From Octopus sinensis (lineage: Eukaryota), in assembly GCF_006345805.1 (NCBI RefSeq), contig NC_043017.1:12958001-13022000 (forward strand): 64,000 nt of DNA, read 5' to 3'. How positions within the stretch are numbered: the stretch's first letter is position 1; every line of letters begins with the position of its first letter. The position numbers were made by a program, and so were the translations under genes. The notes beneath the pieces were generated by a model, which worked only from the letters and a program-made list of their open reading frames with translations, searched no databases and was not told the DNA's origin. Positions 1-49,097 of this stretch are shown in pieces.

Positions 1-320
1 GCTCGTGAAATTAACGTGTAAGTGGCTGAGCACTCCACAGACACGTGCACCCTTAACGTAGTTCTCAGGGATATTCAGCGTGACACAGAGAGTGACAAGG
101 CCGGCCCCTTGAAATACAGGTACAACAGAAACAGGAAGTAAGAGTGAGAGAAAGTTGTGGTGAAAGAGTACATCAGGGATCACCACCACCCCTTGCCGGA
201 GCCTCGTGGAGCTTTAGGTGTTTTCGCTCAATAAACACTCACAACGCCCGGTCTGGGAATCGAAACCGCGATACTATGACCGCGAGTCCGCTGCCCTAAC
301 CACTGGGCCATTGTGCCTCC
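1..320 (-). mobile_element. tRNA-derived SINE family S2 (GTGGAGGCGCAATGG head), cut by the window edge
   Basis: A box/B box (GGTTTCGATTCC) head; matches other copies. Confidence 0.85.
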
Positions 321-2055: not shown

Positions 2056-2439
2056 TGGAAGCACTCCGTCGGTTACGACGATGAGGGTTCCGGTTGATCC
2101 GATCAACGGAACAGCCTGCTCGTGAAATTAACGTGTAAGTGGCTGAGCACTCCACAGACACGTGTACCTTAACGTAGTTCTCGGGGATATTCAGCGTGAC
2201 ACAGAGAGTGACAAGGCCGGCCCTTTGAAATACAGGTACAACAGAAATAGGAAGTAAGAGTGAGAGAAAGTTGTGGCGAAAGAGTACAGCAGGGATCACC
2301 ACCATCCCTGCCGGAGCCTCGTGGAGCTTTTTAGGTGTTTTTGCTCAATAAACACTCACAACGCCCGGTCTGGGAATCGAAACCACGATCCTACGACCGC
2401 GAGTCTGCTGCCCTAACCACTGGGCCATTGCGCCTCCAC
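2056..2439 (-). mobile_element. SINE S2, full length
   Basis: Complete head to GAGTGCTTCCA tail; TGTCTG(A/T)ATG TSD. Confidence 0.9.
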
Positions 2440-2767: not shown

Positions 2768-2945
2768 TTAGACCCTTTAGCATTTAACCCGGCCATATCC
2801 GGCCCAAATATTATACTTGTTTTATGTTCAAACAGGCCAGATCCGGCCTCTCACACATACCCTACAATGTCAATCTAAATATAAACACTCACCTCATCAA
2901 AATCTTGAAGCTACAAGATAATGCAGGATTAATTAAAAACAATCC

Positions 2946-4950
2946 GGATCGTGGCCGATGCCAGCCCCGCCTCGACTGGCTTCCATGTCGGTGGCACGTA
3001 AAAAGCACCATCCGAATCGTGGCCGATGCCTGCGCCGCCTTGACTGGCTTCCGTGTCGGTGGCACGTAAAAAGCACCATCCGAATCATGGCCGAAGCCAG
3101 CGCTGCCTCGACTGGCTTCCGTGTCGGTGGCACGTAAAAAGCACCATCCGAATCGTGGCCGAAGCCAGCGCCGCCTCGACTGGCTTTCCGTGCTGGTGGC
3201 ACGTAAAATGCACCATCCGAATCGTGGCCGAAGCCAGCCCCGCCTTGACTGGCTTCCGTGCCGGTGGCACGTAAAAAGCACCATCCGAATCGTGGCCGAA
3301 GCCAGCGCCGTCTCGACTGGCACCCGTGCCGGTGGCACGTAAAAAGCACCATCCGAATCGTGGCCGATGCCAGCCCCGCCTCGACTGGCTTCCGTGTCGG
3401 TGGCACGTAAAAAGCACCATCCGAATCGTGGCCGAAGCCAGCGCCGCCTCGACTGGCTTCCGTGCCGGTGGCACGTAAAAAGCACCATCCGAATCGTGGC
3501 CGAAGCCAGCGCCGTCTCGACTGGCTTCCGTGCCGGTGGCACGTAAAAAGCACCATCCGAATCGTGGCCGATGCCAGCCCCGCCTCGACTGGCTTCCGTG
3601 TCGGTGGCACGTAAAAAGCACCATCCGAATCGTGGCCGAAGCCAGCGCCGCCTCGACTGGCTTCCGTGCCGGTGGCACGTAAAAAGCACCATCCGAATCG
3701 TGGCCGATGCCAGCGCCGCCTTGACTGCCTTCCGTGTCGGTGGCACGTAAAAAGCACCATCCGAATCGTGGCCGAAGCCAGCGCCGCCTCGACTGGCTTC
3801 CGTGTCGGTGGCACGTAAAAAGCACCATCCGAATCGTGGCCAATGCCAGCGCCGCCTTGACTGGCTTCCGTGTCGGTGGCACGTAAAAAGCACCATCCGA
3901 ATCGTGGCCGAAGCCAGCTCCACCTCGACTGGCTTCCGTGTCGGTGGCACGTAAAAAGCACCATCCGAATCGTGGCCGAAGCCAGCGCCGCCTCGACTGG
4001 CTTCCGTGTCGGTGGCACGTAAAAAGCACCATCCGTATCGTGGCCGATGCCAGCGCGCCTCGAATGGCTTCCGTGCCGGTGGCACGTAAAAAGCACCATC
4101 CGAATCGTGGCCGAAGCCAGCGCCGCCTCGACTGGCTTCCGTGTCGGTGGCACGTAAAAAGCACCATCCGAATCGTGGCCGAAGCCAGCGCCGCCTCTAC
4201 TGGCTTCCGTGCCGGTGGCACGTAAAAAGCACCATCCGAATCGTGGCCGAAGCCAGCGCCATCTCGACTGGCACCCGTGCCGGTGGCACATAAAAAGCAC
4301 CATCTGAATCGTGGCCGAAGCCAGCGCCGCCTCGACTGGCTTCCGTGCCGGTGGCACGTAAAAAGCACCATCCGAATCGTGGCCGAAGCCAGCACCGCCT
4401 CGACTGGCTTCCGTGTCGGTGGCACGTAAAAAGCACCATCCGAATCGTGGCCGAAGCCAGCGCCGCCTAGACTGGCTTCCGTGCCGGTGGCACGTAAAAA
4501 GCACCATCCGAATCGTGGCCGATGCCAGCGCCGCCTCGACTGGCTTCCGTGTCGGTGGCACATAAAAAGCACCATCCGAATCGTGGCCGAAGCCAGTGCC
4601 GCCTCGACTGGCTTCCGTGCCGGTGGCACGTAAAAAGCACCATCCGAATCGTGGCCGAAGCCAGCGCCGCCTCGACTGGCTTCCGTGCTGGTGGCACGTA
4701 AAATGCACCAATCTGACCGTGGCCGATGCCAGCCTCGCCTGGCTCCAGTGCAGGTGGCACGTAAAAAGCACCCAACTACACTCACGGAGTGGTTGGCGTT
4801 AGGAAGGGCATCCAGCAGTAGAAACATTGCCAGATAAGACCGGAGCCTGGTGCAGCCTCCTGGCTTCCCAGATCCCCGGTCGAACCATCCAACCCATGCT
4901 AGCATGGAGAACGGACGTTAGACGATGATGATGATGATGATGATGATGAT
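2946..4950 (+). mobile_element. 5'-truncated RTE 3' UTR with about 27 tandem 68-bp units and (GAT)n tail
   Basis: Unit GTGGCACGTAAAAAGCACCATCCGAATCGTGGCCGAAGCCAGCGCCGCCTCGACTGGCTTCCGTGTCG; terminal segment matches the 3' end of the RTE at 33714-34260. Confidence 0.9.
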
Positions 4951-10402: not shown

Positions 10403-10507
10403 AACATTGAAGTTATGCTTGAAAATTGCTGCAAACATTTCTCTGAGAAGGTGACGAACATCGACAAAATTACAGAAAGCCTGCTTGATATCGATGCAAC
10501 TGATAAG
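10403..10507 (+). CDS. CCDC180: CCDC180-like exon E (0-0)
   Basis: ttaatAG/GTATCA; NIEVMLENCCKHFSEKVTNIDKITESLLDIDATDK. Confidence 0.8.
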
Positions 10508-10603
10508 GTATCATTTTAATTTTCTTACAGTTCAAGATGGATAGATGACAATGCTGTTACTGTGAGCTGCAACAATGTTGGGGTGCTCTAGCATTTTGGT
10601 TAA

Positions 10604-11034
10604 CCCCTTACCCGGCAGAAACGAATATATGCGTTTTGACCGAAATCATTTTTTTTCTATCTCTGGCGAGTTAACTCGTCAAAAGATAGACTCGCCAAAA
10701 TCGACAGCAAACGAGTTCCTTTTAACCCCTTACCCGGCAGAAACGAATATATGCGTTTTGACCGAAATCATTTTTTTTCTATCTCTGGCGAGTTAACTCG
10801 TCAAAAGATAGACTCGCCAAAATCGACAGCAAACGAGTTCCTTCGTCTAAAAACGGGTTAACTCGTTTCTGCCCAAAGCGGTAATTTAAAATCAATATTA
10901 TTGAATTAAAATTCATAATAAATAAGGTTTGAAATATACCTCGAAATCACCATTCAAAACATAGTAAAATAAAACAATTAAAAATTATGTCTGAAAAAAT
11001 ACATTTATTTTCAAAATAATTGTTGGGTAAGGGG
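10604..11034. mobile_element. Second piggyBac-like MITE family with a tandemly duplicated left end (about 122 bp)
   Basis: TTAA-CCCCTTACCC...GGGTAAGGGG-TTAA; left end repeated at 10726. Confidence 0.8.
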
Positions 11035-11987: not shown

Positions 11988-12650
11988 TGGCTCAAAAAGC
12001 AAAAGCAAGGCCATGTAGGGGGACATGGAGTTATGTACAGGGAGGGTGTTCATACAAAGAGTTCCGGCCATTTCTGGTCAAGAGAGACTTTGAACCAAGC
12101 GGTCGTTAGGGGAACATGGAGTTATGTACAGGGAGGGTGTTCATGCAAAGAGTTCCGGCCATTTCTGGTCAAGAGAGACTTTGAACCGAGCGGTCGTTAG
12201 GGGGACATGGAGTTATGTACAGGGAGGGTGTTCATACAAAGAGTTCCAGCCATTTCTGGTCAAGAGAGACTTTGAACCAAGCGGTTGTTAGGGGGACATG
12301 GAGTTATGTACAGGGAGGGTGTTCATGCAAAGAGTTCCGGCCATTTCTGGTCAAGAGAGACTTTGAACCGAGCGGTCGTTAGGGGGACATGGAGTTATGT
12401 ACAGGGAGGGTGTTCATACAAAGAGTTCCGGCCATTTCTGGTCAAGAGAGACTTTGAACCAAGCGGTTGTTAGGGGGACATGGAGTTATGTACAGGGAGG
12501 GTGTTCATGCAAAGAGTTCCAGCCATTTCTGGTCAAGAGAGACTTTGAACCGAGCGGTCGTCGGCATCTTCACTAACTCGTCCGGCAGCTTATTCCACAG
12601 ATCCGCAACCCGGACAGAGAAAGCCCCTCTCCTTCGAACGTATGCGTACA
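11988..12650 (-). mobile_element. CR1-type LINE 3' end with its last 91 bp amplified six times
   Basis: Minus frame RRGAFSVRVADLWNKLPDELV; single-unit relative at 43886-44080. Confidence 0.8.
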
Positions 12651-13938: not shown

Positions 13939-14398
13939 TACACAGAAAAGAAACACGGAGAGAAACAAGGAGAGAAAAAAAATGCATGCAGAAGCTAGCG
14001 ATTCAACATGGCGATCTGTACATGTTTGTTTGTCTATGTTTGTTTGTCTATGTTTGTCCCCCCAACATTGCTTGACAACTGATGCTGGTGTGTTTACGTC
14101 CCCATAACTTAGCAGTTTCGCAAAAGAGACTGATAGATTGAGTATTAGGCTTACAAAGAATAAGTCCTGAGGTTGATTTGCTCGACTAAAGGGCAGTACT
14201 CCAGCATGGCCGCAGTCAAGTGACTGAAGCAAGTAAAGAGTAAAGAGTATACGATGTATGGATGCCAGGAAAATGTTTTCAGACTTTTAGTGAGCACTTG
14301 TTTCATACATTTTCTGAATATAAAGCTTTCTTTTCATAGGTCCCAAGGAATATTGGGAATGTTCAGCATATATTATGTAGAGATGTTAAGGAAATGGA

Positions 14399-15278
14399 TG
14401 GAAGCACTCCGTCGGTTACGACGACGAGGGTTCCGGTTGATCCGATCAACGGAACAGCCTGCTCGTGAAATTAACGTGTAAGTGGCTGAGCACTCCACAG
14501 ACACGTGTACCCTTAACGTAGTTCTCGGGGATATTCAGCGTGACACAGAGAGTGACAAGGCCGGCCCTTTGAAATACAGGTACAGCAGAAACAGGAAGTA
14601 AGAGTGAGAGAAAGTTGTGGTGAAAGAGTACAGCAGGGATCACCACCATCCCCTGCCGGAGCCTCGTGGTTACGACAACGAAGGTTCCGGTTGATCCGAA
14701 TCAACGGAACAGCCTGCTCATGAAATTAACGTGTAAGTGGCTGAGCACTCCACAGACACGTGTACCCTTAACGTAGTTCTTGGGGATATTCAATGTGACA
14801 CAGAGAGTGACAAGGCCAGCCCTTTGAAATACAGGTACAACAGAAACAGGAAGTAAGAGTGAGAGAAGGTTGTGGTGAAAGAGTACAGCAGGGATCACCA
14901 CCATCCCCTGCCGGAGCCTCGTGGTTACGACAACGAAGGTTCCGGTTGATCCGAATCAACGGAACAGCCTGCTCGTGAAATTAACGTGTAAGTAGCTGAG
15001 CACTCCACAGACACGTGTACCCTTAACGTAGTTCTTGGGGATATTCAATGTGACACAGAGAGTGACAAGGCCAGCCCTTTGAAATACAGGTACAACAGAA
15101 ACAGGAAGTAAGAGTGAGAGAAGGTTGTGGTGAAAGAGTACAGCAGGGATCACCACCATCCCCTGCCGGAGCCTCGTGGAGCTTTAGGTGTTTTCGCTCA
15201 ATAAACACTCTCAATGCCCGGTCTGGGAATCGAAACTGCGAGTCCGCTGCCCTAACCACTGGGCCATTGCGCCTCCAC
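14399..15278 (-). mobile_element. SINE S2 with its 255-bp 3' part triplicated; 14-bp TSD
   Basis: TSD GA(T/C)GTTAAGGAAAT; repeat junctions at 14667 and 14922. Confidence 0.9.
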
Positions 15279-15362
15279 GACGTTAAGGAAATATGTCCTG
15301 TGTGTCACAGATGATACACAGGTAAAGGGTTAATCCATCTAATCTGTATCATTCTCTTGCAG

Positions 15363-15458
15363 ATACAAACTGTTTTGTCCAATTACAAGACTTCTTTTCA
15401 AGAAATAGCTTACCTCACAACACCGGAGGTATATCGCCTGATGGAGAGTGAAGTGCAG
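15363..15458 (+). CDS. CCDC180: CCDC180-like exon G (0-0, 96 nt)
   Basis: ttgcAG/GTAATT; IQTVLSNYKTSFQEIAYLTTPEVYRLMESEVQ, strongly matching the recalled CCDC180 motif SYLMRPEVYRLINEEA. Confidence 0.92.
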
Positions 15459-16356
15459 GTAATTAAGCCTTTTTTTTTTTATCACCATTTTCATAATTAC
15501 AATTTTCTGTGTCACTCAAGTAATTAAATTATCATCTGGATAATTGAAATTCTCAATGGGAGAGTTTATTCACCTTACACACACGCACACACACACACAT
15601 ACAAACAAGCAAGCAAGCTTTATCATTTATGATCTCAGTCCAATCCAACTTATTACTTCACTTATTGCTTGATATACTAGAAACAACAGTTAAATCCACC
15701 TTAGATTACTCTCTGCTGTCTTGGAAAAAGAGAAGGATACATTAGATAATATATATTTCTTTACTACCCACAAGGGGCTAAACATAGAGGGGACAAACAA
15801 AGGGATTAAGTCGATTACATCGACCCCAGTGCGTAACTGCTACTTAATTTATCAACCCCAAAAGGATGAAAGGCAAAGTCGACCTCGAAACGTAACGACA
15901 GACGAAATACTGCTACGAATTTCGCCCGGCGTGCTAACGTTTCTACCAGCTCGCCGCTGGTATATTAGATAATATAGTGGTGAATACACTACCTGAGAGA
16001 TGGATGGGATGATCATGGTTGGAGTGTCTTTGATCATAAGTCTGCTTAGTCAGTTAATCCTGGGGCTAAACTACAACAAACACAACAGTAACAATAACAA
16101 CCACCACCACAGCAGCTACAGTAACAACAACAGCAACACCATCACCAACAACCACAACACTAACAACAGCAACAACCACAGACCTACCATCTGATTCTGT
16201 TCTTTTTCTGTCTTTTCAATTGACCCCAAAAGAATGAAAGGTAAAGTCAACCTCAGTGGCATTTGAACTCAGAACAAATTTGAACGGCAGACGAAATACA
16301 GCTAAGCATTTCGCCCAACATGCTAACAATTCTGCCAGCTTGCCACATTAGTAGTA

Positions 16357-17036: not shown

Positions 17037-17092
17037 ATAATAATAATAATAATAATGATGATGATGATGTTATCAATTTGGTTTTATTTCAG

Positions 17093-17256
17093 ATTATCAA
17101 CCAGACCTTGTTGAATAACAAACAAAGCTACACTGATATTTATACCCAATTACTCCTGGTTAACATAGAACAAGATCGGAAGCATCATTTAAACTGGAAG
17201 TCAATCATGACTCTTTGGAGAAACAAGAACGTACAGGAAATTCTTGAAAGATTCAG
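17093..17256 (+). CDS. CCDC180: CCDC180-like exon H (0-2)
   Basis: atttcAG; IINQTLLNNKQSYTDIYTQLLLVNIEQDRKHHLNWKSIMTLWRNKNVQEILERF; weak GTTACT donor abutting a SINE tail. Confidence 0.85.
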
Positions 17257-17261
17257 GTTAC

Positions 17262-18088
17262 TCTTACTCTCTTTTACTCTTTTACTTGTTTCAGTCATTT
17301 GACTGCGGCCATGCTGGAGCACCGCTTTTAATCAAGCAAATCGACCCCGGGACTTATTCTTTGTAAGCCCAGTACTTATTCTATCGGTCTCTTTTGCCGA
17401 ACCGCTAAGTGACAGGGACGTAAACACACCAGCATTGGTTGTCAAGCAATGGTGGGGGGGACAAACACAGACACACAAGCATATACACACACACTTATAT
17501 ATATATACATATATACGACAGGCTTCTTTCAGTTTCAGTCGAGCAAATCGACCCCGGGACTTATTCTTTGTAAGCCCAGTACTTATTCTATCGGTCTCTT
17601 TTGCTGAACCGCTAAGTGATGGGGATGTAAACACACCAGCATCGGTTGTCAAGCAATGCTAGGGGGACAAACACAGACACACAAGCATATACACACACAC
17701 TTATATATATATACATATATACGACAGGCTTCTTTCAGTTTCAGTCGAGCAAATCGACCCCGGGACTTATTCTTTGTAAGCCCAGTACTTATTCTATCGG
17801 TCTCTTTTGCTGAACCGCTAAGTGATGGGGATGTAAACACACCAGCATCGGTTGTCAAGCAATGCTAGGGGGACAAACACAGACACACAAACACACACAC
17901 ACATACATAAGTATATATACATATATACGACAGGCTTCTTTCAGTTTCCGTCGACCAAATCCACTCACAAGGCATTGGTCGGCCCGGGGCTATAGCAGAA
18001 GACAATTGCCCAAGATGCCACGCAGTGGGACTGAACCCGGAACCATGTGGTTGGTAAGCAAGCTACTTACCACACAGCCACTCCTGCG
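17262..18088 (-). mobile_element. SINE S1 with an internal 206-bp triplication
   Basis: Units start near 17331, 17538 and 17744. Confidence 0.9.
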
Positions 18089-18619
18089 TTGAGTTTTTTT
18101 CTTTTTTCTTTTTTGTTTTGTTTTTTTCTTTTCTAAGGAAATCTTTAAATAATGCACAAGAAAATTTTCCAGTTTTCATTTCCTCTGATTTATCTGTTGT
18201 TCTATTGTCTTCTTGTTTTAGTCATTTAACTGCAGCCATTCTAAGGCACTGCTTTTAAGGGTTTTCCCCATTAATCACATCAACCCCAGTAATTATATCA
18301 GTCTAGTGCTTATTTTATCATTCTTGGTTTATTGGCCAGTTACACTCGAGACTGCTCCAATCTGGCCAGCCCCAAGAAAATCTAAGCTAAGAGCACTAGA
18401 TTCTTTGGAAGAAAGCAAGCAAAAAGAATTAGGGAAGGACGAGAAAGAGAGAAAAAGAAAGGAAAGGGACAGAGTGAGGTAAAGGAGGAGGGAAAGTGAT
18501 GAGAATGAAGAGAAGGCTAAGAAATGTGAGAGAGGGGGAAAAACAAAAAGAAAAGTGGAAAGAATGAAGAAAGTGTGAAGGGGTCTAAAAGAAAGAGTAA
18601 AAGAGTCATACAGAATTTA

Positions 18620-19590
18620 TATATTCTACTCCCTTTATCTCTTCTCTCTTTCTTCTCCGCCCCCACTTTTCTTACTTCTTCCCCCTTCATTCTACGCCCC
18701 TTCCAACTTCTCCCCTTTACACTCCTCCCTTCTTACTACTCTTCTCCTTCTCACTTCTCCTCCCCTTCCCACTTCTTCTCCCCTTCCCACTTCTCCTCCC
18801 CTTCCCAATTCTTCTTTCCCACTTCCCCACTTCCCTCTTCTCCCCTCTCCACTTTGTCTTCCCTTCCCACTTCTCCCCATCCCACTTCTCCCCTGATTTC
18901 ACTTCCCATTCCCCCTGTCCTCTCCTTCCCACTTCTCCTCTCTTCCCACTTCTTCTCCCTTTGCCACTTCTTCCCTTTGCCACTTCTCCCTTCCCACTTC
19001 TTCCCTTTCCCACTTCTCCCCATCCCACTTCTCCCCTGATTTTACTTCCCATTCCCCCTGTCCTCTCCTTCCCACTTCTCCTCTCCTTCCCACTTCTCCT
19101 CTCTTCCCACCACTTCTCCCTTTCCACTTCTCCCCTTCCCACTTCTCCCCTTTCCACTTCTCCCCATCCCACTTCTTCCCTTATTTCCCTTCCCATTCCC
19201 CCTGTCCTCTCCTTCCCACTTCTCCTCTCCTTCCCACTTCTCCTCTCATCCCACTTCTGCCTTTGCCACTTCTTCCCTTCCCACTTCTCCCCTTTCCACT
19301 TCTCCCAGCTTGCCACTTTTCCTCTCCTTCCTACTTCTTCCCTTTCCCACTTCTCCCTTCCCACTTCTTCTTCCATTCCCACTTCTTCCCTTATTTCCCT
19401 TCCCGTTCCCCCTCTCCTCTCTTTCCCACTTCTTCCCTTTCCCACTTCTTCCCTTTCCCACTTCTACCCCTTCCACTTCTTCTTCCATTCCCACTTCTTC
19501 CCTTATCTCCCTTCCCATTCCCCCTCTCCTCTCTTTCCCACTTCTCCCCCCCCCTTCCTACTTCTTTGCCCTTTCCCACTTCTCCTTCTC
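18620..19590. repeat. Polypyrimidine/polypurine minisatellite (CCCACTTCT-type)
   Basis: About 1 kb almost free of G on the + strand. Confidence 0.95.
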
Positions 19591-19668
19591 TAGGAACTCT
19601 ACCAGAAAAATTTGAAAAATTTCTCAAGACATTTCAAATGATTCTATTCTAATTTTCATTTTCTCCAG

Positions 19669-19788
19669 ACGATACATGTTGACCACAGCCTCTACCAAAC
19701 CGAAAGAAGTTCAAATCTTACTTGATGAGATAAACACTAAATTTTCAAATGTATTAAATGAATATAAAGAACATTTACAATTTCTCAG
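19669..19788 (+). CDS. CCDC180: CCDC180-like exon I (2-2)
   Basis: ctccAG/GTATGT; RYMLTTASTKPKEVQILLDEINTKFSNVLNEYKEHLQFL. Confidence 0.85.
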
Positions 19789-19875
19789 GTATGTTCTACA
19801 TTTTCACTCACACAAAAACCATTTGTCATTTTTTTTCTGTGTGTAGTTATTCCTTTATTGCCCACAGTGGGATAA

Positions 19876-20208
19876 ACATCATCATCATCATTGTTCGACC
19901 GTGGTCGAGACAATGGAATTTACCATGCTACGCCAGACTTGACGGTCCATCATGGCATGACGGAGGTCCTGTTGCTGGATGCCTGTATCCCTGGAGATTA
20001 CATCAGGGTAGGAGAGTGTGCGCCCTCTGGTATTGCGAGTAGATGGCTTCCAGAGGAGAAGAGTAGAAATTACTTCTTTTTCAGCTCTACAACAATGTCC
20101 AGCAAACTGGACTCTCCTACCTTTCACAAGAGATGACACAGGTGGTAGTTTCCCATATATTTGCATTTTGGTTGGAAGGCGCTTCCACGAGAGATTTTGA
20201 GCTCTCAT
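19876..20208 (-). mobile_element. 3' end of another RTE-type LINE with (GAT)n tail
   Basis: RRVQFAGHCCRAEKEVISTLLLWKP...RGRTLSYPD...MMDRQVWR. Confidence 0.85.
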
Positions 20209-21264
20209 AAGGGCTAAACATAGGGGGGACAAACAAGGACAGACAAACGGATTAAGTTAATTACATCGACCCCAGTGCATAACTGGTACTTAATTTATCG
20301 ACCCCGAAAGGATGAAAGTCAAAGTTGACCTCGGCGGAATTTGAACTCAGAATGTAACAGCAGACGAAATACCACTAAGCATTTCGCCCATGCAAACGAT
20401 TCTTCCAGCTCACTGCCTTGCCAAATGTAAATGGCCATTCATCAGATAAAATCTTGGTTGTGTGCATGGGTCAGTTGTGATTTCTATGTGGCAAAATGTG
20501 GGATCAAATCCAATGCTATAAAAGGGTTTTAGTCAAACAAATCAACCCCAGTATTATGGTTTTGAACCATTAAATTATGCAGATGTAAACAAACCAACAC
20601 CAGTTGTCAGATAGGAAAAGAAGACACACATGCACACACCGAAAACACACACACACACATGCGTATATATACACACACAACAGGATTCCACACAGTTTCT
20701 GTCTACCAACTACACCCGCATGGCATTGGTTGACCCAAAGCTATAGTTGAAGATGTTTGTGCAAGATGTCACACACTGGAACTGAACCTGGAATCAAACG
20801 GTTGTAAAGCGAGCATCTTAACCACACAGCCATATCTACATTTGTATATATATATTTGTGTGTGTGTGTAATGATTGTGCATGTGTGCCTGTGTATATGA
20901 GTTTGTATGTCTATGTGTGTGTCTGTGTATACAATGTGTGTATGTGTGTGTGTGTAGATATATACACATACATATACTTTTTTTTGTAGAATGGCATTGT
21001 AGTTGTCAGCACTGATTGAGCAGGCCTATAATCAAAGACATTCCAGCCTTGACCATTCCATTTGTTGTATATCTGGGACTACACTGTCCAATATGTCCTT
21101 CCTGTTTTAAGATGGTAGGCTATAATTTAAGGGAGTCTGACTGTTGTTACCAGCAGATCGAGCACACACACACACCCCCATAGGGACTTGTGATCATGCA
21201 ATGGTTAGTACACCCACATTGTACCCCAACATTCTTGTGGTATTGTAGCAATGTCACAACAAGG

Positions 21265-21665
21265 CGATGAGCTAGCAGAATCGTTAGCACGCCGGGAGAC
21301 ATGCTTAGCGGTATTTCGTCTGCCGCTACGTTCTGAGTTCAAATTCCGCCGAGGTCGACTTTGCCTTTCATCCTTTAGGGATCGATAAATTAAGTACCAG
21401 TTACGCACTGGAGTCGATGTAATCGACTTAATCCGTTTGTCTCCTCTGTGTTTAGCCCCTTGTGGGTAATAAAGAAATAGGTATTTCATCTGCCGCTACG
21501 TTCTGAGTTCAAATTCCGCCGAGGTCGACTTTGCCTTTCATCCTTTCGGGGTCGATTAAATAAGTTCCAGTTACACACTGGGGTCGATATAATCGACTTA
21601 ATCCGTTTTGTCTGTCCTTGTTTGTCCTCTCTGTGTTTAGCCCCTTGTGGGTAGTAAAGAAATAG
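21265..21665 (+). mobile_element. SINE family S3 (Nin/Deu-like domain), tandem pair
   Basis: GTTCAAATTCC B box; GACTTTGCCTTTCATCCTTTCGGGGTCGATAAATTAAGTACC resembles the Nin/Deu domain. Confidence 0.85.
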
Positions 21666-21771
21666 GTATTGTAGCAATGCTGTAGACATGTCTGGGTGGC
21701 AAAATAAGCATATAAAAATGTTTTAAAGTATATTTGATATTGTAAACCTGTTTTCTTTTAAATTTGAATAG

Positions 21772-21851
21772 GAGTTTCTTGCCACCAAAATGCACGAAAG
21801 CTTTTGTTGCAGAATGGTTTGGAAGAATAAACGAGGTAACGGAAAAACTAA
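21772..21851 (+). CDS. CCDC180: CCDC180-like exon J (2-1)
   Basis: gaatAG/GTAAGT; SFLPPKCTKAFVAEWFGRINEVTEKL vs recalled human [26 protein letters not shown]. Confidence 0.9.
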
Positions 21852-21951
21852 GTAAGTAACGAGAGTTTGATGTAATAAAGAGTTAAAGTTTCTATTCATC
21901 ACTCAGGAACACATATACACTTCATCATATATGTGTGTGTTTGTGTGTGTG

Positions 21952-23199: not shown

Positions 23200-23400
23200 A
23201 ACATATTTCTGTTATATATATATAAAGGTTGTGTCTTGCAAACTTTTCAATAGTCCTAAAAAGGTTGCAAGACGCAACGAAAATTTAAGAAAATAAAGAT
23301 AAGTAAGTGGAAGTTTTTACCAGTGAGTGTGTTACATTATAAGGCACAAAAAGAAAATGACTCTCCCCAGACACAACAGTATATATATATATATATATAT

Positions 23401-23572
23401 AGGCGCAGGAGTGGCTGTGTGGTAAGTAGCTTGCTTACCAACCACATGGTTCCGGGTTCAGTCCCACTGCGTGGCACCTTGGGCAAGTGTCTTCTACTAT
23501 AGCCTCGGGCCGACCAAAGCCTTGTGAGTGGATTTGGTAGACGGAAACTGAAAGAAGCCCGTCGTATATATG

Positions 23573-23607
<35 letters not shown>

Positions 23608-23791
23608 CTGTGTTTGTACCCCCAACATCTCTTGACAACCGATGCTGGTGTGTTTATGTTCCCGTCACTTAGCAGGGAGACCGATAGAATAAGTACTGGG
23701 CTTACAAAGAATAAGTCCCGGGGTCGAGTTGCTCGACTAAAGGCGGTGCTCCAGCTTTGCCACAGTCAACTGACTGAAACAAGTAAAAGAG
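23401..23791 (+). mobile_element. SINE S1
   Basis: Same head and tail. Confidence 0.9.
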
Positions 23792-23804
23792 TATATATAT
23801 AGCA

Positions 23805-24060
23805 CTTTGTGAAAGCCCTGTGGAAGTCCTCCAAAGTGAAGGTATCCAGCACTCTTGTCACAGCCTCCTTCATCATGGAGAACAACCAAAAGTCACAGTA
23901 AGCAAGGTCTGGATTGTAGGAAGGATGAGGGACAGTTTTGATGCTTATTTCTATCAAGTAGTTGACTACCAAGGTCGAATCATGGACTGATGCATTGTCC
24001 TGATGCAGGTGCCGCTGACCCAAGAGGTAGAACTCTGGCCCTTTGCAATAAAGTCTGTTC
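23805..24060 (-). mobile_element. Mariner (DD34D-type) transposase fragment
   Basis: LHQDNASVH...VPHPSYNPDLAYCDFWLF. Confidence 0.85.
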
Positions 24061-24153
24061 CAATGAACGATTTGTTGACAGGAGAAATGACAGTAATATA
24101 GCTGCTTGTAGCTCCTCATGATGTGTATTCATCACCTTAGCACATCTTCATTT

Positions 24154-24789
24154 GTGGAGGCGCAATGAGTGACACAGAAAATTGTAATTATGAAAATGGG
24201 GATAAAAAAGGCTTGATACCTGCACTTCACTCTCCATCAGGCGATATACCTCTGGTGTTGTGAGATAAGCTATTTCTTGAAAAGAAGTCTTGTAATTGAA
24301 CAAAACAGTTTGTATCTGCAAGAGAATGATACAGATTAGATGGATTAACCCTTTACCTGTGTATCATCTGTGACACACAGGACATATTTCCTTAACGTCG
24401 TGGAGGCGCAATGGCCCAGTGGTTAGGGCAGCAGACTTGAGGTCATAGGATCGCGGTTTCGATTCCCAGACCGGGCGTTGTGAGTGTTTATTGAGCGAAA
24501 ACACCTAAAAGCTCCACGAGGCTCCGGCAGGGGATGGTGGTGATCCCTGCTGTACTCTTTCACCACAACTTTCTCTCACTCTTACTTCCTGTTTTCTGTT
24601 GTACCTGTATTTCAAAGGGGCCGGCCTTGTCACTCTCTGTGTCACGCTGAATATCCCCGAGAACTACGTTAAGGGTACACGTGTCTGTGGAGTGCTCAGC
24701 CACTTACACGTTAATTTCACGAGCAGGCTGTTCCGTTGATTCGGATCAACCGGAACCCTCGTCGTCGTAACCGACAGAGTGCTTCCATC
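24154..24789 (+). mobile_element. Composite insertion: SINE S2 (24400-24789) plus captured 5' flank carrying antisense CCDC180 exon G
   Basis: 13-bp TSD CACATCTTCATTT at 24141-24153 and 24790-24802; 24166-24399 is the reverse complement of 15279-15518. Confidence 0.9.
24220..24315 (-). pseudogene. Inverted duplicate (pseudo-exon) of CCDC180 exon G
   Basis: 93/96 identical to 15363-15458; AG and GT retained on the minus strand. Confidence 0.92.
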
Positions 24790-24811
24790 CACATCTTCAT
24801 TTTCTCTCTCA

Positions 24812-25220
24812 CTTTACTCTTTACTCTCTTTTACTTGTTTCAGTCATTTGACTGCGGCCATGCTGGAGCACCGCCTTTAGTCGACCAAATCGACCCCGGG
24901 ACTTATTCTTTGTAAGCCCAGTACTTATTCTATCGGTCTCTTTTTTGCCGAACCGCTAAGTGACGGGGACGTAAACACACCAGCATCGGTTGTCAAGCAA
25001 TGCTAGGGGGACAAACACACACACACACACACAAACACACATATATACATATATATACATATATACGACAGGCTTCTTTCAGTTTCCGTCTACCAAATCC
25101 ACTCACAAGGCATTGGTCGGCCCGGGGCTTTAGCAGAAGACACTTGCCCAAGATGCCACGCAGTGGGACTGAACCCAGAACCATGTGGTTGGTTAGCAAG
25201 CTACTTACCACACAGCCACT
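24812..25220 (-). mobile_element. SINE S1
   Basis: Same family. Confidence 0.9.
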
Positions 25221-25389
25221 CTCTGCTCACTTATAATAACACAATGTCTCGCTAATATTTTAACTCAATGATGATTTATTTTGAAAATATGTTTAAAATA
25301 TATTGTATCTGGTTTAACTTTTTTAACATTCAGAATACTCTGTCAAATGTTATGCTTATTTATTCATTTTGCTTTTAATTTATCATACA

Positions 25390-27104: not shown

Positions 27105-27192
27105 ATGAGCAATTCCAATACAATTTTGATTATTAATTACTACCAATTAATTTTGATTAGAGACTTTATTTCTCTTTTATTGCAATTTTCAG

Positions 27193-27281
27193 AAAAGGAG
27201 AAACGGGAATTCCTGATAAACATGAAAGCGGAATATGAAAAGTGTAACCTACTATGTTTAGAAAAAATGCAAGAAGAAGAG
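27193..27281 (+). CDS. CCDC180: CCDC180-like exon K (1-0)
   Basis: ttttcAG/GTATGT; KEKREFLINMKAEYEKCNLLCLEKMQEEE. Confidence 0.88.
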
Positions 27282-27330
27282 GTATGTGCGGCCTTTTTGT
27301 TCTTAATATTTTATTATATTTATATATTTA

Positions 27331-27618
27331 CTAGCAGTATCGCCCGGCGTTGCTCGGGTTTGTATAAGCATTTTTAGAGAGTTATTTCCCTTATATAATA
27401 GCAAAAAAATGCATTAAAAATGGAAAAAAATGATGGTAAATTATTTTTTAAATCATAGACTCATCGCAGACGCACGCTAATACCCAGAAGGGCTCGATAT
27501 GAATCACGACTATAAGATACCCGGTTTTGGTTAAACTGCACCGCAAAATGTGGGAGTAGTTAGGAATCAAAATCGTAGGAGACAGACACTCACGCAACCT
27601 CACTTTTATATATAAAGA
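27331..27618 (-). mobile_element. Non-autonomous Helitron, internally deleted, just after exon K
   Basis: Same termini. Confidence 0.8.
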
Positions 27619-28248
27619 TATACATAAAAAGCACCATCCGTACATGGCCGTTGCCAGCGCCACCTCGACTGGCTTCTGTGCCGGTGACACATAAAAAGCA
27701 CCATCCGAACGTGGCCGTTGCCAGCGCCACCTCGACTGGCTTCTGTGCCGGTGGCACATAAAAAGCACCATCCGAACGTGGCCGTTGCCAGCGCTGCCCC
27801 GACTGGCTTCTGTGCCGGTGGCACATAAAAAGCACCATCTGAACGTGGCCGTTGCCAGCGCTGCCCCGACTGGCTTCTGTGCCAGTGGCACATAAAAAGC
27901 ACCATCCGAACGTGGCCATTGCCAGCGCCGCCCCGACTGGCTTCTGTGCCGGTGGCACATAAAAAGCACCATCCGAACGTGGCCATTGCCAGCGCCGCCC
28001 CGACTGGCTTCTGTGCCGGTGGCACATAAAAAGCACCATCCGAACGTGGCCGTTGCCAGCGCTGCCTTGGCTGGCTTCCGTGCCAGTGGCACGTAAAAAG
28101 CACCCACTACACTCGCGGAGTGGTTGGCGTTAGGAAGGGCATCCAGCTGTAGAAACTCTGCCAGATCAGACTGGCTTCCCAGACCCCGGTCGAACCGTCC
28201 AACCCGTGCTAGCGTGGAAAACGGACGTTAAACGATGATGATGATGAT
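27619..28248 (+). mobile_element. RTE 3' UTR copy with about 7 tandem 67-bp units and (GAT)n tail
   Basis: Same unit family and terminal GAGTGGTTGGCGTTAGGAAGGGCATCCAGC motif. Confidence 0.9.
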
Positions 28249-33713: not shown

Positions 33714-36700
33714 TCATCATCATCATCATCATCATCATCGTTTAACGTCCGCTTTCCATGCTAGCATGGGTTGGACGGTTCAACTGGGGTCTGGGAAGCC
33801 CGAAGGCTGCACCAGGCCAGTCAGATGTGGCAGTGTTTCTACCAGCTGGATGCCCTTCCTAACGCCAACCACTCCGAGAGTGTAGTGGGTGATTTTATGT
33901 GCCCACGACACAGGTGCCAGACGAGGCTGGCAGACGGCCACGCTCGGATGGTGTTTTTTTTATGTGCCACCGACACAGGTGCCAGACGAGGCTGGCAGAC
34001 GGCCACGCTCGGATGGTGTTTTTTATGTGCCACCGACACAGGTGCCAGACGAGGCTGGCAGACGGGCCAGCTCGGATGGTGTTTTCTTATGTGTCACCGA
34101 CACAGGTGCTAGACGAGGCTGGTGGACGGCCACGCTCGGATGGTGTTTGTTACGTGCCCTCAGCACGGAGGCCAGTCATTGCGGTACTGGCTACGGTCAC
34201 GTTCGGATGGTTTTCTTATGTGCCACCGGCACTGGTACCACAGGATACAAATTCCATTGATGTTCATCTATTTTGATTTGGTTCGATTTGATTTGATACG
34301 ATTCGATTCGATTCTCACTTGCCTCAACAGGTCTTCACAAGTGTCACAAGAAGGAAGGTATGCACAGGTGGACTGACTACGTCCCAGGTAGGGGCCACGG
34401 ATTATGGCTTCACTAGTCTTGCGGGTCTTCTCACGCACAGCATACTTCCATAGGTCTCGGTCTCTAGTCATTTCCATGGTGAGACCTAACGTCCGAAGGT
34501 CGTGCTTCACCACCTCGTCCCAGGTTTTCCTGGGTCTACCTCTTCCACGGGTTCCCTCAACTGCTAGGGATTGGCACTTTCTCACACACCTCTCTTCATC
34601 CATTCTCGCCACATGACCATACCAGCGCAATCGTCTCTCTTGCACACAACAACTGATGCTTCTTAGGTACAACATTTCTCTCAAGGTACTAACGCTCTGT
34701 CGAGTAAGTACACTGACATTACACATCCATCGGAGCATACTGGCTTCGTTCCTCACGAGCTTACGCATGTCCTCAGCAGTCACGGCCCATGTTTCACTGC
34801 CATGTAGCATAGCTGTTCGTACACATGCATCATACAGTCTGCCTTTTACTCTGAGCGAGAGGCCTTTAGTCACCAGCAGAGGTAAGAGCTCCCTAAACTT
34901 TGCCCAGGCTATTCTTATTCTAGCAGTTACACTTTCAGCGCACCCACCCCCACTACTGACTTGGTCACCTAGATAGCGGAAACTATCAACTACTTCTAGT
35001 TTTTCCCCCCGGAAAGTGACAGAAGTTGTTTTCTGCAGATTTTCGGAGGTCAGTGCTCCAGAGCACCTGCCACATACAAAAACTATCTTCCCAGTTAGCC
35101 TACCTTTGACATTGCTGCACCTCTTATGTGTCCATAGCTTACACTGGGTACATCTTATAGAGTTTCTACCTACACCTTTTCTACAGATCGAACAGGGCCA
35201 TCTTCCTGATGATATTTGTGGGTTTTCTACCTTTCTACTTATTAGTACTTTGGTTTTAGCTAGGTTGACTCTAAGGCCCCTCGATTCTAAACCCTCCTTC
35301 CACACCTGGAACTTCTCCTCCAGTTCTGATAGTGACTCAGCGATTAGAGCGAGGTCGTCAGCATAGAGGAGCTCCCAGGGGCAACCGGACTTGAATTCCT
35401 CCGTTTTGCCTGGAGGACTATGATAAATAGGAGGGGGCTGAGTACTGAACCCTGGTGGACCCCAACCTCTACTTTGAATTCTTCTGTGTACATGTTGCCA
35501 ACTCTAACCTTACTTACGGCATCTCTGTACATGGCTTGCACAGCCCTCACCAGCCATTCATCTATCCCTAGTTTCCTCATTGACCACCAGATGAGGGATC
35601 GGGGGACCCTATCAAAGGCTTTCTCCATGTCAACAAAAGCCAGGTACAGGGGCTTATCCTTGGCTAGGTATTCTCCTGCAGCTGCCTTACCAGGAATATA
35701 GCATCAGTGGTGCTTTTCCCTGGGACAAACCCAAACTGCATCTCATCTAAACTAACTCTCTCTCTAATTAGTTGGGCTAAGACCCTCTCCGTAACCTTCA
35801 TTACCTGATCCAACAGCTTGATACCTCTGTAATTATTTGTATCCAGGGCATCACCTTTACCTTTGTAGCAGTTGACTAGTATGCTGCTACACCAGTCATT
35901 GGGTATGACTCCTTCGTGTATCACCTGGTTGACTATACGGGTGACTAGGTTATAGCCGACACTGCCAGATATTTTGAGCATCTCTGCAGTAATTCCTGAT
36001 GGGCCTGGGGCTTTCCCTGTCTTCATGCTCCTAACTGCCTTAGCTACTACGGAACTATCAACTCGGATAGCTGGTCCCTCTGTTGGGTCAACATTTGGCA
36101 GACTCTCTTTATCCCATTCATTTTCTTTATTCAGCAAACTTTCATAGTGGCATCTCCAAACCTCTCTCTTTGCATCCTCATTTAGCGCAAGTGAACCATC
36201 ATCCATGCGAACACACTTCTCTCCTACCACATCACGATTCTCTCTCACACACTGTCTTGCAACACGAAATACCTCAAGTCTTTCATCCTCACGGCTCAGA
36301 ACATTGGCAAATTTTTTCTTATCCGCTTCCCCTCTGGCTATATAAACTTGTCTCCTAGCTTCCCTTTTGGCTGTCTGATACAATTCCCTGCTACCACCGT
36401 TCTTCCAGTCCCTCCAAGCCTGTCTCTTTTGTCTAATAGCCCCGTCAACCACCGTGTTCCACCACCATGTTACTCTGGGTCGAGATGGTACTTTGCTCCA
36501 TCCACAGATCTGGTCAGTGGCTGTCAGCAGATTGTCCCGTAGGAATCTCCAGTTGTCTTCCACATTAAGTGAAGCTATATCCCCTTCTATTTCGTCAGAG
36601 GCTTCGAGTAGTATGTCTCTAAATCTCTGTGCATTTGCAGGATCTTTAAGCTTCCAGACCCTTCTCCTCCAAGCTGGTCTTCTTCTGGGCGACCATTTAG

Positions 36701-37497
36701 CTCTGATCCTGAAGTCGCTAACTACTAATCTATGTTGGGGAGTACATTCTTCGCCTGGGAAGGTTTTGGCATTTATAATCAGCCCTCTTTCCCTTTTTCT
36801 GGCAAGGATGTAGTCAATCTGGCTGGTGTGTCTGCCAGAACGGTAGGTGACTAGGTGAGAGGTGGGTTTCCTGAAGTGGGTATTGCAGACCATAAGGTCA
36901 TTTGCATCGCAGAACTCCAGCAGCCTGGTTCCCTCCTCATTTCGAGAGCCAAAACCGTGGCCTCCATGGATGCCATGGAAGCCCCTGACATGTCGTCCAA
37001 CATGTCCATTGAAATCACCTGCCACGAAGAGAAGGTCACTGTCATTTGTCAATGAGGTAGTCCGCAATAGGGTGTCATAGAATTGGTCTTTTGTCCTTCC
37101 GGTAGCCCTGGTTGAGGGGCATATGCCGAGATGATGGTAGCTGTCCTATGGTGAAGAACTAATCTAATTTTAATTACTCTGTCACTTATTCTGACTACCT
37201 CGATTACCTTACCTATCCATTTCTCCGCGAGAAGTATACCCACGCCCCCGATACCGTCAATGTTCCCTGCCCAGAAAATCTTGTACCTGTGTTCCTTGCC
37301 CGTGAGGAGCCTAGCAGAACCTCCTCTCCACCTTACTTCCTGGATACAGCATACATCCACACGTCTCCGTTCAAGCAGCTCTACAATCTCTCCAGACCTA
37401 CCTTTCAATGTGCCAACGTTGAGCGTGCCAACTCTGAGGGTTTGGGAGGTGTGGGCATCAGAGACCCTGGGACGAGGACAGCAGTGTCATGTACCTG
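33714..37497 (-). mobile_element. Near full-length RTE-clade LINE (APE endonuclease + RT), three -1 frameshifts, 3' UTR with tandem repeats and (GAT)n tail
   Basis: LRVGTLNVGTLKGRS, VCCIQEVRW, GDFNGHVG, IDYIL, QFGFVPGKSTTDAIF, VHQGSVLSPLLF, LLYADD, RLRWYGHV. Confidence 0.95.
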
Positions 37498-38204: not shown

Positions 38205-38531
38205 CGAAGCAACTAGTTTGAATACTATATTTGAGGGGGAAAAATAATTAATTAGATAAATGACTGAATGAAAGCCAGAGAGAGAATGAAAATAGATAAA
38301 TAATAAAAAATACGGTAGAGAATGGAAATAGATAAATAATGAAAAAAATACGGTAGAGAATGAGAATAGATAAATAATGAAAAAAATACGGTAAGAGACG
38401 AGGGGGCATATGGTCTGCAATACCCACTTCAGGAAACCCACCTCTCACCTAGTCACCTACCGTTCTGGCAGACACACCAGCCAGATTGACTACATCCTTG
38501 CCAGAAAAAGGGAAAGAGGGCTGATTATAAA

Positions 38532-47194: not shown

Positions 47195-48367
47195 TCATAA
47201 CCGGCTAACTTCCATGATTTCTTCATCTTTGTTCTGTTCAGGATCGTCATTTTGCTCAAACAATGGGTTGACCATTTTCCGTTCCACTTGGGTAATCTCA
47301 GCTCCACCCACATGCCAAGAATTAGTCTTGTGGTTCAATTCACTTAATATTTCATCTTCATGATTGAAATCATCCGATCCCAGGGCATTTCTGTCGGTGT
47401 TCCTCATCCACCGAGTATTACGCATCTGAGCTTTCTCTCTTTCTTGGGCATTTTCTGGCACTTCAAGACCCTGTGGTTTCATTCCGATTGTGATTGGTGT
47501 GTCGATCCGCATTTCAGTGTTGTCTGCCATTTCCAGCTTGAACTGGAATGAATATTCCACCTCAATCAGGTCACAGTAGTCTAGGTTAGATTCTGGGATA
47601 TAAGGAGGGACAGCTAAACGCACATTTCTCCACTTTCGACCTTCGCAGTACCCCATTTCGTATTCGTCTCGCCGCTTGTTTACCACCTGTAGGAAACTGA
47701 TGCTTTTCTTCTGTGCATGGTAAGTACTGTTCATCAAGAGGGAAGCTTGAATTGCATAGATAACTTTAGGACTTCGGTTTGTAATATCGGCATCAATAAG
47801 TATATCTTCCCCAGGGACTAAACCTGATTTTTTTATTGTCACATCCATCAATATCTTACCAAATGTACACCCCTTCCATGCTTTCTTCTGGTGTGTTATA
47901 TTTTTTGGCTTTAAGAGTGCGGCAGACAATGGTAATGGTCTGACAATTAAGAAAGGCTCGCTGGTAATGTTAGTTTCACCAACTCTGTCTCCAGAAATAA
48001 TTGCTTTTAATACGTACGTCACATTACCGTATTTTCCGATGAAGGAAGAGGGTAAATTATATGGTAGCTGATAGTCAAAAGGGAAATTATGTGGACCGGC
48101 ATTCAAACTCAGTGGTTCTGTATTCTTCATGTCCATAATCAACTTTGAGGCGTCCATGTATATCTCGCTTGCTTGGTTTTGTTGTTGATTGTCTTCCCAA
48201 CAGACCCGCCCCTCACCAAGAACACTGATCATAATGGTTCGGAGTAAAGTTGGACTGGAGAGAGATAGCTGTATAGATCCCCGGAGTATCTCACCTGGTT
48301 GATATTGATAATGTTCGTCGATATCATGTTCTAAGTTTATCGTAAAATGTTTCACAGACATATCCAT
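47195..48367 (-). CDS. Intronless alpha-arrestin (arrestin domain-containing protein), 390 aa, nested antisense
   Basis: YQPGEILRGSIQL, AGPHNFPFDYQLPYNLPSSFIGKYGNVTYVLKA (Arrestin_N) and GLVPGEDILIDADITNRS, IEVEYSFQFKL, TPITIG (Arrestin_C); uninterrupted non-repetitive ORF. Confidence 0.93.
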   Translation of the reverse strand: MDMSVKHFTINLEHDIDEHYQYQPGEILRGSIQLSLSSPTLLRTIMISVLGEGRVCWEDNQQQNQASEIYMDASKLIMDMKNTEPLSLNAGPHNFPFDYQLPYNLPSSFIGKYGNVTYVLKAIISGDRVGETNITSEPFLIVRPLPLSAALLKPKNITHQKKAWKGCTFGKILMDVTIKKSGLVPGEDILIDADITNRSPKVIYAIQASLLMNSTYHAQKKSISFLQVVNKRRDEYEMGYCEGRKWRNVRLAVPPYIPESNLDYCDLIEVEYSFQFKLEMADNTEMRIDTPITIGMKPQGLEVPENAQEREKAQMRNTRWMRNTDRNALGSDDFNHEDEILSELNHKTNSWHVGGAEITQVERKMVNPLFEQNDDPEQNKDEEIMEVSRL

Positions 48368-48774
48368 TTTTCACAATGTCACACTACCTCCAGAAAGGAG
48401 GTTCAAAGAATCCAGCAAAAAATCTTTTTGTCACAAAGGATATTTGACTAAATTTTTTTTTATTCTATTATTAAAAATAGATTTCTTATGTGTTATAGAC
48501 ACATATTTTTGTTTTGTTTTTTGGGGATTTTTTTTTTTTTTTGTAAAATCCAGTGAATTTTAAATTAATTCCTCTTTAATATTTCGAAAATTTTACTATA
48601 GTTTCCCAATGGCATGGCAGACTAGAATCATTTAACTGTCTTGTACTTTTCTTCAGTGTAAATCTGAAACCAAAAAAAAAAAGAAAAGAAAAGGAAATTA
48701 TAAATTTTCTTCATAATGCATTTTATCAACAAGCACATATATAAGCACAATATCACATTTGTCCACACACATAT

Positions 48775-49097
48775 AGGAGCACTCCGTCGGTTACGACGAC
48801 GAGAGTCCCAGCTGATACGATCAACGGAACAGCTTGCTCGTGAAATTAACGTGCAAATGGCTGAGCATTCCACAGATACATGTACCCTTAACGTAGTTCA
48901 CAAGGAGATTCAGCGTGACACAGAGTGTGACAAGGCTGGCCCTTTGAAATACAGGTACAACTCATTTTTGCCAGCTGAGTAGACTGGAGCAACGTGAAAT
49001 AAAGTGTCTTGCTCAAGGACACAACGCGTCGCCGGGAATTGAACTCCCGACCTTACGATCATGAGCCAAATGCCCTAACCACTAAGCCATGCGCCCT
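48775..49097 (-). mobile_element. SINE, S2-type tail with a Meta-like central domain
   Basis: TTGAGCAAGACACTTTATTTCACGTTGCTCCAGT on the minus strand. Confidence 0.8.

Follow-up and report, generated by a model that had tools for sequence, protein, structure and literature searches.

An antisense copy of a coding exon joined to a SINE in an intron of an Octopus sinensis gene

The host gene and the composite insertion

In this analysis we examined a window of 64,000 nucleotides of the Octopus sinensis genome (GCA_006345805.1, CM016879.1:12958001-13022000), whose + strand carries a 1480-residue gene with the domains DUF4455 and DUF4456; the gene call spans the locus discussed here. Because both domains are present, we take the host gene, a cilia-related one, to be CCDC180-like. 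The intron between its exons at 21770-21856 and 27192-27287 holds a composite insertion (24141-24802), in the same + strand gene, in which a short interspersed element (SINE) of a family designated S2 here stands, together with an inverted copy of an upstream exon of the gene (exon G), inside one pair of target-site duplications (TSDs).

The exons were placed by aligning to the window a DUF4455 protein of Octopus bimaculoides (P0006), which had been recovered with a chimeric query, as had the orthologue of a nested arrestin-domain gene described below; when exon G or one other exon was used singly as the protein query, no candidate was found. This alignment yields 16 collinear exons on the + strand, the first eight starting at about 1856, 5511, 8076, 9164, 10403, 12688, 15363 and 17090 and the last eight at about 19667, 21770, 27192, 30544, 31760, 32966, 41498 and 42671. 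Exon G alone matches positions 104-138 of Pfam DUF4455 (E = 5e-4), directly continuing the match of the exon before it (positions 59-104), and a concatenation of exons matches DUF4455 at 8e-27. Exon G is also represented in the O. bimaculoides protein. Since its DUF4455 match is collinear with that of the preceding exon, we regard exon G as a genuine coding exon. An exact look-up of seven open reading frames (ORFs) of the window found none of them in the collection searched.

Read from left to right, the composite consists of the TSD, nucleotides 1-14 of the S2 head, an inverted 232-bp piece of the flank of a second S2 element in the same gene (the source), a complete S2 and the TSD again (Table 1). 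The original prediction for this locus, made from the letters of the DNA, had proposed this arrangement, and all of its statements on the sequence were borne out, with small corrections of coordinates. The TSD CACATCTTCATTT occurs exactly twice in the 64 kb, at the two ends of the composite. The bases that follow its first occurrence, GTGGAGGCGCAATG, are indeed the first 14 of S2, with 14/14 identity to the S2 5' ends at 24400, 2439 (-) and 15278 (-). Alignment also reproduced the predicted reverse complement of 15279-15518, in which the exon is retained at 93/96 and the 84 bp that adjoin the SINE are identical to the donor at 84/84 positions. The complete S2 stands before the second TSD as foreseen, its start lying a few bases from the one that had been implied. 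For the source, predicted at 14399-15278, the element itself stood and its left boundary had to be corrected to 14396.

The captured segment contains, in this order, intron, exon G, intron, the 5' TSD of the source and the trinucleotide GTC. It differs from the donor by five substitutions and two indels, one of 1 bp and one of 5 bp in an A-run (A6 vs A11). At its junction with the stray head two nucleotides are shared (TG, 24166-24167 / 15517-15518; caaTG/AGTGAC vs cttTG/AGTGAC); if they are counted, the segment starts at 24166 and the donor ends at 15518. To the left of 24166 and to the right of 24791 no homology to the source region was found. Chance cannot produce a repeat of 13 nt together with a head that matches at 14/14 positions and some 620 bp of homology. 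The source S2 lies about 9 kb from the copy, in cis and in inverted orientation, and both of its own TSDs are intact. It had been predicted that only the 5' TSD of the source was copied and that the copy stops at the SINE tail, and this is what is seen. Because the copy has the source 5' TSD and the GTC and is without the source 3' TSD, copying ran from the source to the copy.

Table 1. Features of the composite, of its source and of the reference S2 copies (positions in the window)
Feature	Position	Strand	Remarks
13-bp TSD CACATCTTCATTT, 5' copy	24141..24153	.	exact match
Stray S2 head, nt 1-14, GTGGAGGCGCAATG	24154..24167	+	canonical S2 5' end directly after TSD
Captured host segment, reverse complement of 15279-15516	24168..24399	-	pairwise alignment
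Copy of exon G, 93/96 identity	24220..24315	-	alignment
Copied source 5' TSD ATTTCCTTAAC with extra GTC	24386..24399	+	TSD itself 24386-24396
Complete one-unit S2 SINE, close to family consensus	24400..24789	+	ends ...GCTTCC+ATC
13-bp TSD CACATCTTCATTT, 3' copy	24790..24802	.	exact match
Source TSD, 3' side of the element, GTTAAGGAAAT on + strand	14385..14395	.
Source S2 SINE, tail ...GCTTCC+ATCC	14396..15278	-	alignment
Source TSD, 5' side of the element	15282..15292	.	separated from head by GAC (+ strand; GTC in SINE sense, 15279-15281)
Donor segment of host gene	15279..15518	+	alignment to copy
Exon G, seventh exon of DUF4455/DUF4456 (CCDC180-like) gene	15363..15458	+	Pfam DUF4455; P0006
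Reference S2, one unit, TSD ACAT[A/T]CAGACA, no ATC extension	2056..2439	-	defines S2 ends
S2 copy truncated by window edge	1..320	-	used in consensus

The surroundings of the composite and of its host gene show several further features. Two inverted copies of another, abundant SINE family, about 1 kb apart (23392-23791 on the - strand and 24808-25238 on the + strand), flank the insertion site, and only about 5 bp separate the 3' TSD of the composite from the 5' end of the copy on the right. In the left flank, the ORF 23766-24119 was read by eye as a remnant of a mariner/Tc1-like transposase, for which Pfam gave no match; it is not relied on here. An intron of the DUF4455 gene houses, nested in antisense, an intronless gene for a 390-aa arrestin-domain protein (Arrestin_N and Arrestin_C; 47195-48367, - strand), which is 96 % identical to an O. 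bimaculoides protein and has the same nested position there. Some 85 bp downstream of the exon 10403-10516 there is a perfect (100 %) 122-bp tandem duplication (10600-10843), which is either very recent or an assembly artefact.

The S2 family and the relative age of copy and source

Four S2 copies are present in the 64 kb, and a fifth element carries the S2 3' module only. As expected of a tRNA-derived SINE, the copies are dispersed, with defined ends and TSDs of their own (11 bp at 2056-2439, 11 bp at the source, 13 bp at the copy and 13 bp at the fifth element), and the reference S2 begins with the bases GTGGAGGCGCAATG directly after its TSD. In the S2 of the copy a box A-like motif, TGGCCCAGTGG, fits the consensus TRGCNNAGTGG and a box B-like motif, GTTTCGATTCC, agrees with the consensus GGTTCGANTCC at 10/11 positions. 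Neither ARAGORN nor Rfam found a tRNA match for the S2 head, and no similarity to the S2 tail was seen among the long interspersed elements (LINEs) of the window; the partner LINE of S2 may sit elsewhere in the genome. Exact-pattern scans of metagenome and prokaryote-genome collections for S2 gave no match, and no S2 was found in the O. bimaculoides sequence L002, whose orthologous region in the window is 37-58 kb.

The 3' part of the source is built of three tandem 255-bp units, A (15177-14923), B (14922-14668) and C, the last together with the tail (14667-14396), and its head bears a private 14-bp deletion between TCGCGGT direct repeats and three private substitutions; the original prediction had named the loss of 14 bp from the head and the triplicated 3' part, and both features are present. 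Private substitutions are unevenly spread over the element. Unit C and the tail (14396-14667) are near consensus with a single one, vs about 10 in the remainder (14668-15278); by parts, there is 1 in unit C vs about 3 in the 115 bp of the head and 7 in the 255 bp of units A/B. The asymmetry of unit C has p = 0.035, and the comparison of the head with unit C gives p = 0.046 by Fisher's test. Gene conversion by a young S2, perhaps the copy itself, may account for the state of unit C. Internal tandem amplification recurs in the window: beside the S2 array (255 bp x 3.0, 14414-15179) there are one in the abundant SINE family (206 bp x 3.0, 17335-17961) and one of a 91-bp unit (x 6.0, 12016-12561), and the two arrays with exactly three copies, of S2 and of the abundant family, lie no more than 3 kb apart.

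Relative ages were read from an alignment in which the S2 of the copy was set beside units A, B and C of the source, the other two S2 elements and, for the 3' module, the fifth element. In this alignment the S2 of the copy is consensus-like, with few private changes, and the changes private to the source, that is the three head substitutions, the 14-bp deletion and the seven substitutions of units A/B, are absent from it; no substitution exclusive to copy and source was found. The seven substitutions of units A and B are common to these two units and occur neither in unit C nor in the copy nor in the other S2 copies, which gives counts of 7 shared in the A/B lineage, 1 in unit C and 1 in the unit of the copy. 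According to the original prediction the source was triplicated only after it had been copied. Under that order the binomial probability of such an excess is P(>=7 of 9) = 0.008, and a Poisson calculation, with the clock taken from all differences between copy and source, gives p = 0.003-0.03, so that later triplication is disfavoured. The tandem array of the source appears, from these counts, to be older than the duplication of the flank.

The differences between copy and source amount to 11 substitutions, several indels, the 14-bp indel and the number of units (one vs three); their divergence is 2-4 % plus indels. Noncoding DNA of the O. bimaculoides sequence L002 is 88-95 % identical to the window. 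Since the captured flank has diverged by 2.2 % vs this interspecies identity, the event would be far younger than the split of O. sinensis and O. bimaculoides. The copy of exon G encodes ...VLFNY..., like O. bimaculoides, and the functional exon ...VLSNY... (S = TCC); the nonsynonymous change from F to S would have arisen in the functional exon G after the duplication, in the O. sinensis lineage. At this residue the copy does keep the ancestral state, as the original prediction had it; what is disfavoured in that claim is the timing of the triplication.

Other repeats of the window were noted alongside S2. The fifth element (48773-49100, - strand) is a chimeric SINE, with another tRNA-like head (GAGGGCGCATGGCTTAGTGGTTAGGGC...), the S2 3' module from TTGTACCTGTATTTCAAAGGGCC onward and a TSD, TATGTGTGTGGAC, of roughly 13 bp, which suggests that modules are shuffled among octopus SINE families. 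The alignment to O. bimaculoides ends exactly at its 3' end (48773), and the element looks lineage-specific. A frameshifted non-LTR (lacking long terminal repeats) retrotransposon at 34268-37408 (-), with weak, below-gathering Pfam matches to Exo_endo_phos, RVT_1 and a PHD-like finger, has a 3' end unlike the S2 tail and is not an obvious partner LINE. One arm of a 123-bp inverted duplicate, 100 % identical (36772-36894 / 38409-38531, arms about 1.5 kb apart), lies inside the ORF region for the LINE endonuclease and reverse transcriptase (RT); this may be another local template switch or an assembly artefact. Minisatellite-like arrays at 2889-4905, 27448-28107 and 33771-34276 produce spurious multi-frame ORFs of up to 612 aa (repeated ...GAFYVPPARKPVEAALASATIRMVLFTCHRHGSQSRRRW...).

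Routes from the source to the copy

We favour, with a rough probability of 0.5, the reading of the composite as a scar of DNA repair in which an inverted repeat was expanded by one-sided invasion. An ordinary one-unit S2 would have retrotransposed into CACATCTTCATTT; its TSD and canonical termini are those that any S2 insertion leaves. Later a double-strand break, which we infer together with the order of these events, would have opened the S2 head between nt 14 and 15, and the 3' end on the side of the SINE body would have invaded the inverted homologous S2 9 kb upstream. Synthesis would then have copied the head from nt 14 to 1, left the homology and run 238 nt into the donor flank, that is through GTC, the 5' TSD of the donor element, intron, exon G and 58 nt of the next intron. 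Having dissociated, the new strand would have been joined, at the 2-nt TG microhomology, to the second broken end, on which S2 nt 1-14 remained. In this way the S2 inverted repeat would have grown from about 390 bp to about 620 bp, and a downstream intron would now hold a coding exon copied in antisense. The same process has a variant in which replication would switch template from one inverted S2 copy to the other, as in fork stalling and template switching or microhomology-mediated break-induced replication (FoSTeS/MMBIR).

Under break repair the stray 14-nt head is automatic, because it would be the recipient's own 5' end, starting at S2 nt 1 beside the TSD. The head of the original prediction is there, but under repair the template switch invoked for it is not called for. 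Recipient sequence is duplicated, as one-sided invasion requires, S2 nt 1-14 standing both at 24154-24167 and at 24400-24413. The insert has 390 bp of S2 homology on one side and the 2-nt TG join on the other, the pair of junctions by which coupled homologous and end-joining repair is recognised. The source S2, 9 kb away in cis and with its structure kept, can serve as the donor; nearby donors are preferred in ectopic repair, and with four S2 copies in 64 kb it is no surprise to meet an independent inverted S2 within 10 kb. The S2 of the copy, consensus-like and free of the changes private to the source, looks like an element of independent origin. Break repair needs no later changes in the source, and an older source array is harmless to it. 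Only local events are visible in the window, so that what counts is the ratio of local repair (B-type) to local retrotransposition (A-type), and this ratio, as judged with rough priors, strongly favours repair.

The nearest competitor is the mechanism of the original prediction, SINE-mediated 5' transduction of the exon, which we rank below break repair and regard as distinctly less probable, if still a serious possibility. Of this claim, the direction from source to copy and the capture of a real exon stood; the RNA route is one of two that lead to this structure, as DNA repair gives an identical one. In detail, an antisense read-through RNA starting at or upstream of 15516-15518 would cross exon G into the source S2, the RT of the partner LINE would copy from the S2 tail the SINE and 238 nt of upstream flank and then jump to nt 14-1 of an S2 RNA, and the complementary DNA (cDNA) would integrate at CACATCTTCATTT, 9 kb downstream. 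Such a course agrees with an entire unit between TSDs that ends at the S2 tail, with a segment contiguous with the 5' end of the source that carries the source 5' TSD and GTC and is without the 3' TSD, and with the absence of a TTTT run from the captured flank in SINE sense; upstream-promoter transduction with template switching is documented for SVA and L1 (PMC12593883). It has to accept, however, that 14 nt of S2 head intervene between the TSD and the transduced segment, and it needs for them an extra, ad hoc template jump whose landing places S2 nt 1 exactly at the start of the insert. It presupposes a putative antisense transcript and an insertion within 10 kb of the source, for which random retrotransposition gives p of about 7e-6 (with the genome size taken as about 2.7 Gb); we know of no local bias in LINE-mediated insertion. 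All source-private changes (the 14-bp deletion, three head and seven A/B substitutions) would have to be later than the copying, a chronology disfavoured for the triplication as set out above, or else an RNA with three units would have lost two of them through a crossover in the first 54 nt of a unit. The absence of any substitution exclusive to copy and source likewise speaks against it.

Several observations weigh against break repair and suit transduction better. ATC(C) after GCTTCC is common to copy and source, and elsewhere the 3' extension is absent (2056-2439) or TA (the element at 48.8 kb). Similarly, GATTCGG is found in the copy and in units A and B, and GATCGG in the other copies, a single-base T/TT length variant in an assembly based on long reads. 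Under break repair these shared states mean that the two SINEs must be siblings from one master. The flank divergence (5/232) is not smaller than that of the SINE (6/375; Fisher p = 0.76); equal divergences are what a single event predicts, and under break repair they imply near-contemporary SINEs and a break soon after both insertions. Two weaknesses lie in the argument itself: the S2 consensus was built from four elements only and is weak, and the reasoning from location rests on rough prior rates and no measurement.

The remaining routes fare worse. A broken S2 head might have been primed on an antisense read-through RNA, extended by RT and closed by end joining; this RNA-templated repair would give the same architecture and junctions as DNA repair and would explain the 14-nt head, and the window does contain a LINE with remnants of endonuclease and RT, but it requires both a break and the putative antisense RNA, and no mark of an RNA intermediate such as splicing or a tail is seen, so that we consider it improbable. 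Still less credit is given to a nested insertion, in which a 5'-transducing S2 entered a resident S2 with nt 1-14 as a 14-bp TSD, a length that we count as within the local TSD range of 11-13 bp, and the tandem pair then collapsed by homologous deletion. The end product would fit the observed structure; yet the same improbable local landing is needed, the target would have to lie exactly at resident nt 1 and the later deletion would have to leave no hybrid trace, which are too many coincidences. Equally small is the chance that we give to a simple inverted segmental duplication or an assembly artefact taken together. The single-base indels of homopolymers (A6 vs A11) could be errors in a long-read assembly, but homology stops on both sides exactly at the 13-bp direct repeat, copy and source differ by 11 substitutions, the 14-bp indel and one vs three units, and a mis-join would yield neither a TSD nor a canonical SINE 5' end. 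The original prediction had named homology past either TSD as the sign of a DNA-level duplication; none was found, and plain inverted duplication is excluded by the end of homology at the TSDs, as is an assembly artefact by divergence, indels and TSD. An independent retro-insertion of the 232-bp piece into a SINE head, with a 14-bp TSD, was rejected, as its end would have to coincide exactly with the boundary of the source SINE.

Possible consequences and comparison with known systems

Whichever route was taken, a long intramolecular double-stranded RNA (dsRNA) could form across a coding exon, and the locus bears on the origin of substrates for editing or circular RNA. Pairing of the copy with exon G and its flanks is possible over 231 bp, at a predicted free energy (dG) of -404 vs -67 kcal/mol for shuffled controls; inclusion of the S2 arms brings the potential pairing to some 620 bp, and a single pre-mRNA contains both arms. 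Three exons (17090-21856) are enclosed by the inverted repeat. Recoding by ADAR is heavy in cephalopods. The antisense exon copy could be a newborn editing-complementary sequence that drives A-to-I editing of exon G, or back-splicing or skipping of the three enclosed exons, a speculation drawn from predicted pairing to which we attach a low probability.

With a divergence of about 2 %, the locus offers a clean, datable case of SINEs moving or duplicating exon sequence within a gene. If break repair is the true account, dense intronic SINE pairs in octopus would be seeds for the growth of inverted repeats that swallow exons. If transduction is, a tRNA-type SINE would have performed exon-carrying 5' transduction with local reinsertion, and such transduction would extend to an element of the RNA polymerase III (Pol III) type in a mollusc. 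There is also a methodological lesson, in that a TSD-flanked SINE with a duplicated 5' flank is by itself no proof of an RNA intermediate.

Exon capture by 5' transduction is known for SVA elements. For SVA and L1, 5' transduction from an upstream promoter, sometimes with template switching, has been described (PMC12593883), and as in those cases the host sequence that adjoins the source element at its 5' end reappears here with the element inside one TSD. Unlike them, the octopus element is a SINE of the tRNA type whose putative Pol III promoter is internal; its copy lies 9 kb from the source with an extra 14-nt head at the 5' end, and the case is read from sequence. Under the transduction account the insert also resembles the U6-L1 type of chimeric retrocopy that Buzdin et al. 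are said to have traced, in 2002, to template switching by the LINE RT, in that its 5' part would come from a second RNA joined at a short microhomology; those chimeras, however, carry a whole or large second RNA, whereas the octopus insert has only 14 nt.

On the side of repair, Richardson and Jasin reportedly described coupled homologous and end-joining repair in 2000. One-sided invasion of this coupled kind is attributed to Puchta (1998, Plant J 13:331) where that paper is cited in PMC4762383. In such repair, one end invades an ectopic homologue, synthesis passes into the donor flank and the far end is closed by microhomology or non-homologous end joining (NHEJ), with donor flank inserted and recipient sequence duplicated, as would be the case here. 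The known cases are experimental, with induced breaks, whereas the octopus composite would be a fixed germline event read from its sequence. Formally the same process is the expansion of inverted-repeat boundaries in plastid genomes, reportedly set out by Goulding et al. in 1996, in which one broken arm is restored with the other as template and synthesis past the border enlarges the repeat; the octopus locus differs in being nuclear and in having SINEs 9 kb apart as arms, and the event would have been resolved by end joining. The element itself also has its counterparts, since tRNA-derived SINEs of octopus, reported by Ohshima & Okada (1994) as cited in PMC4824008, share with S2 the dispersal of copies, the presence of TSDs and a tRNA-like head, in which the A and B boxes of S2 are putative. 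Under either mechanism the type of event is thus already known elsewhere, and the octopus locus is a new example of it.

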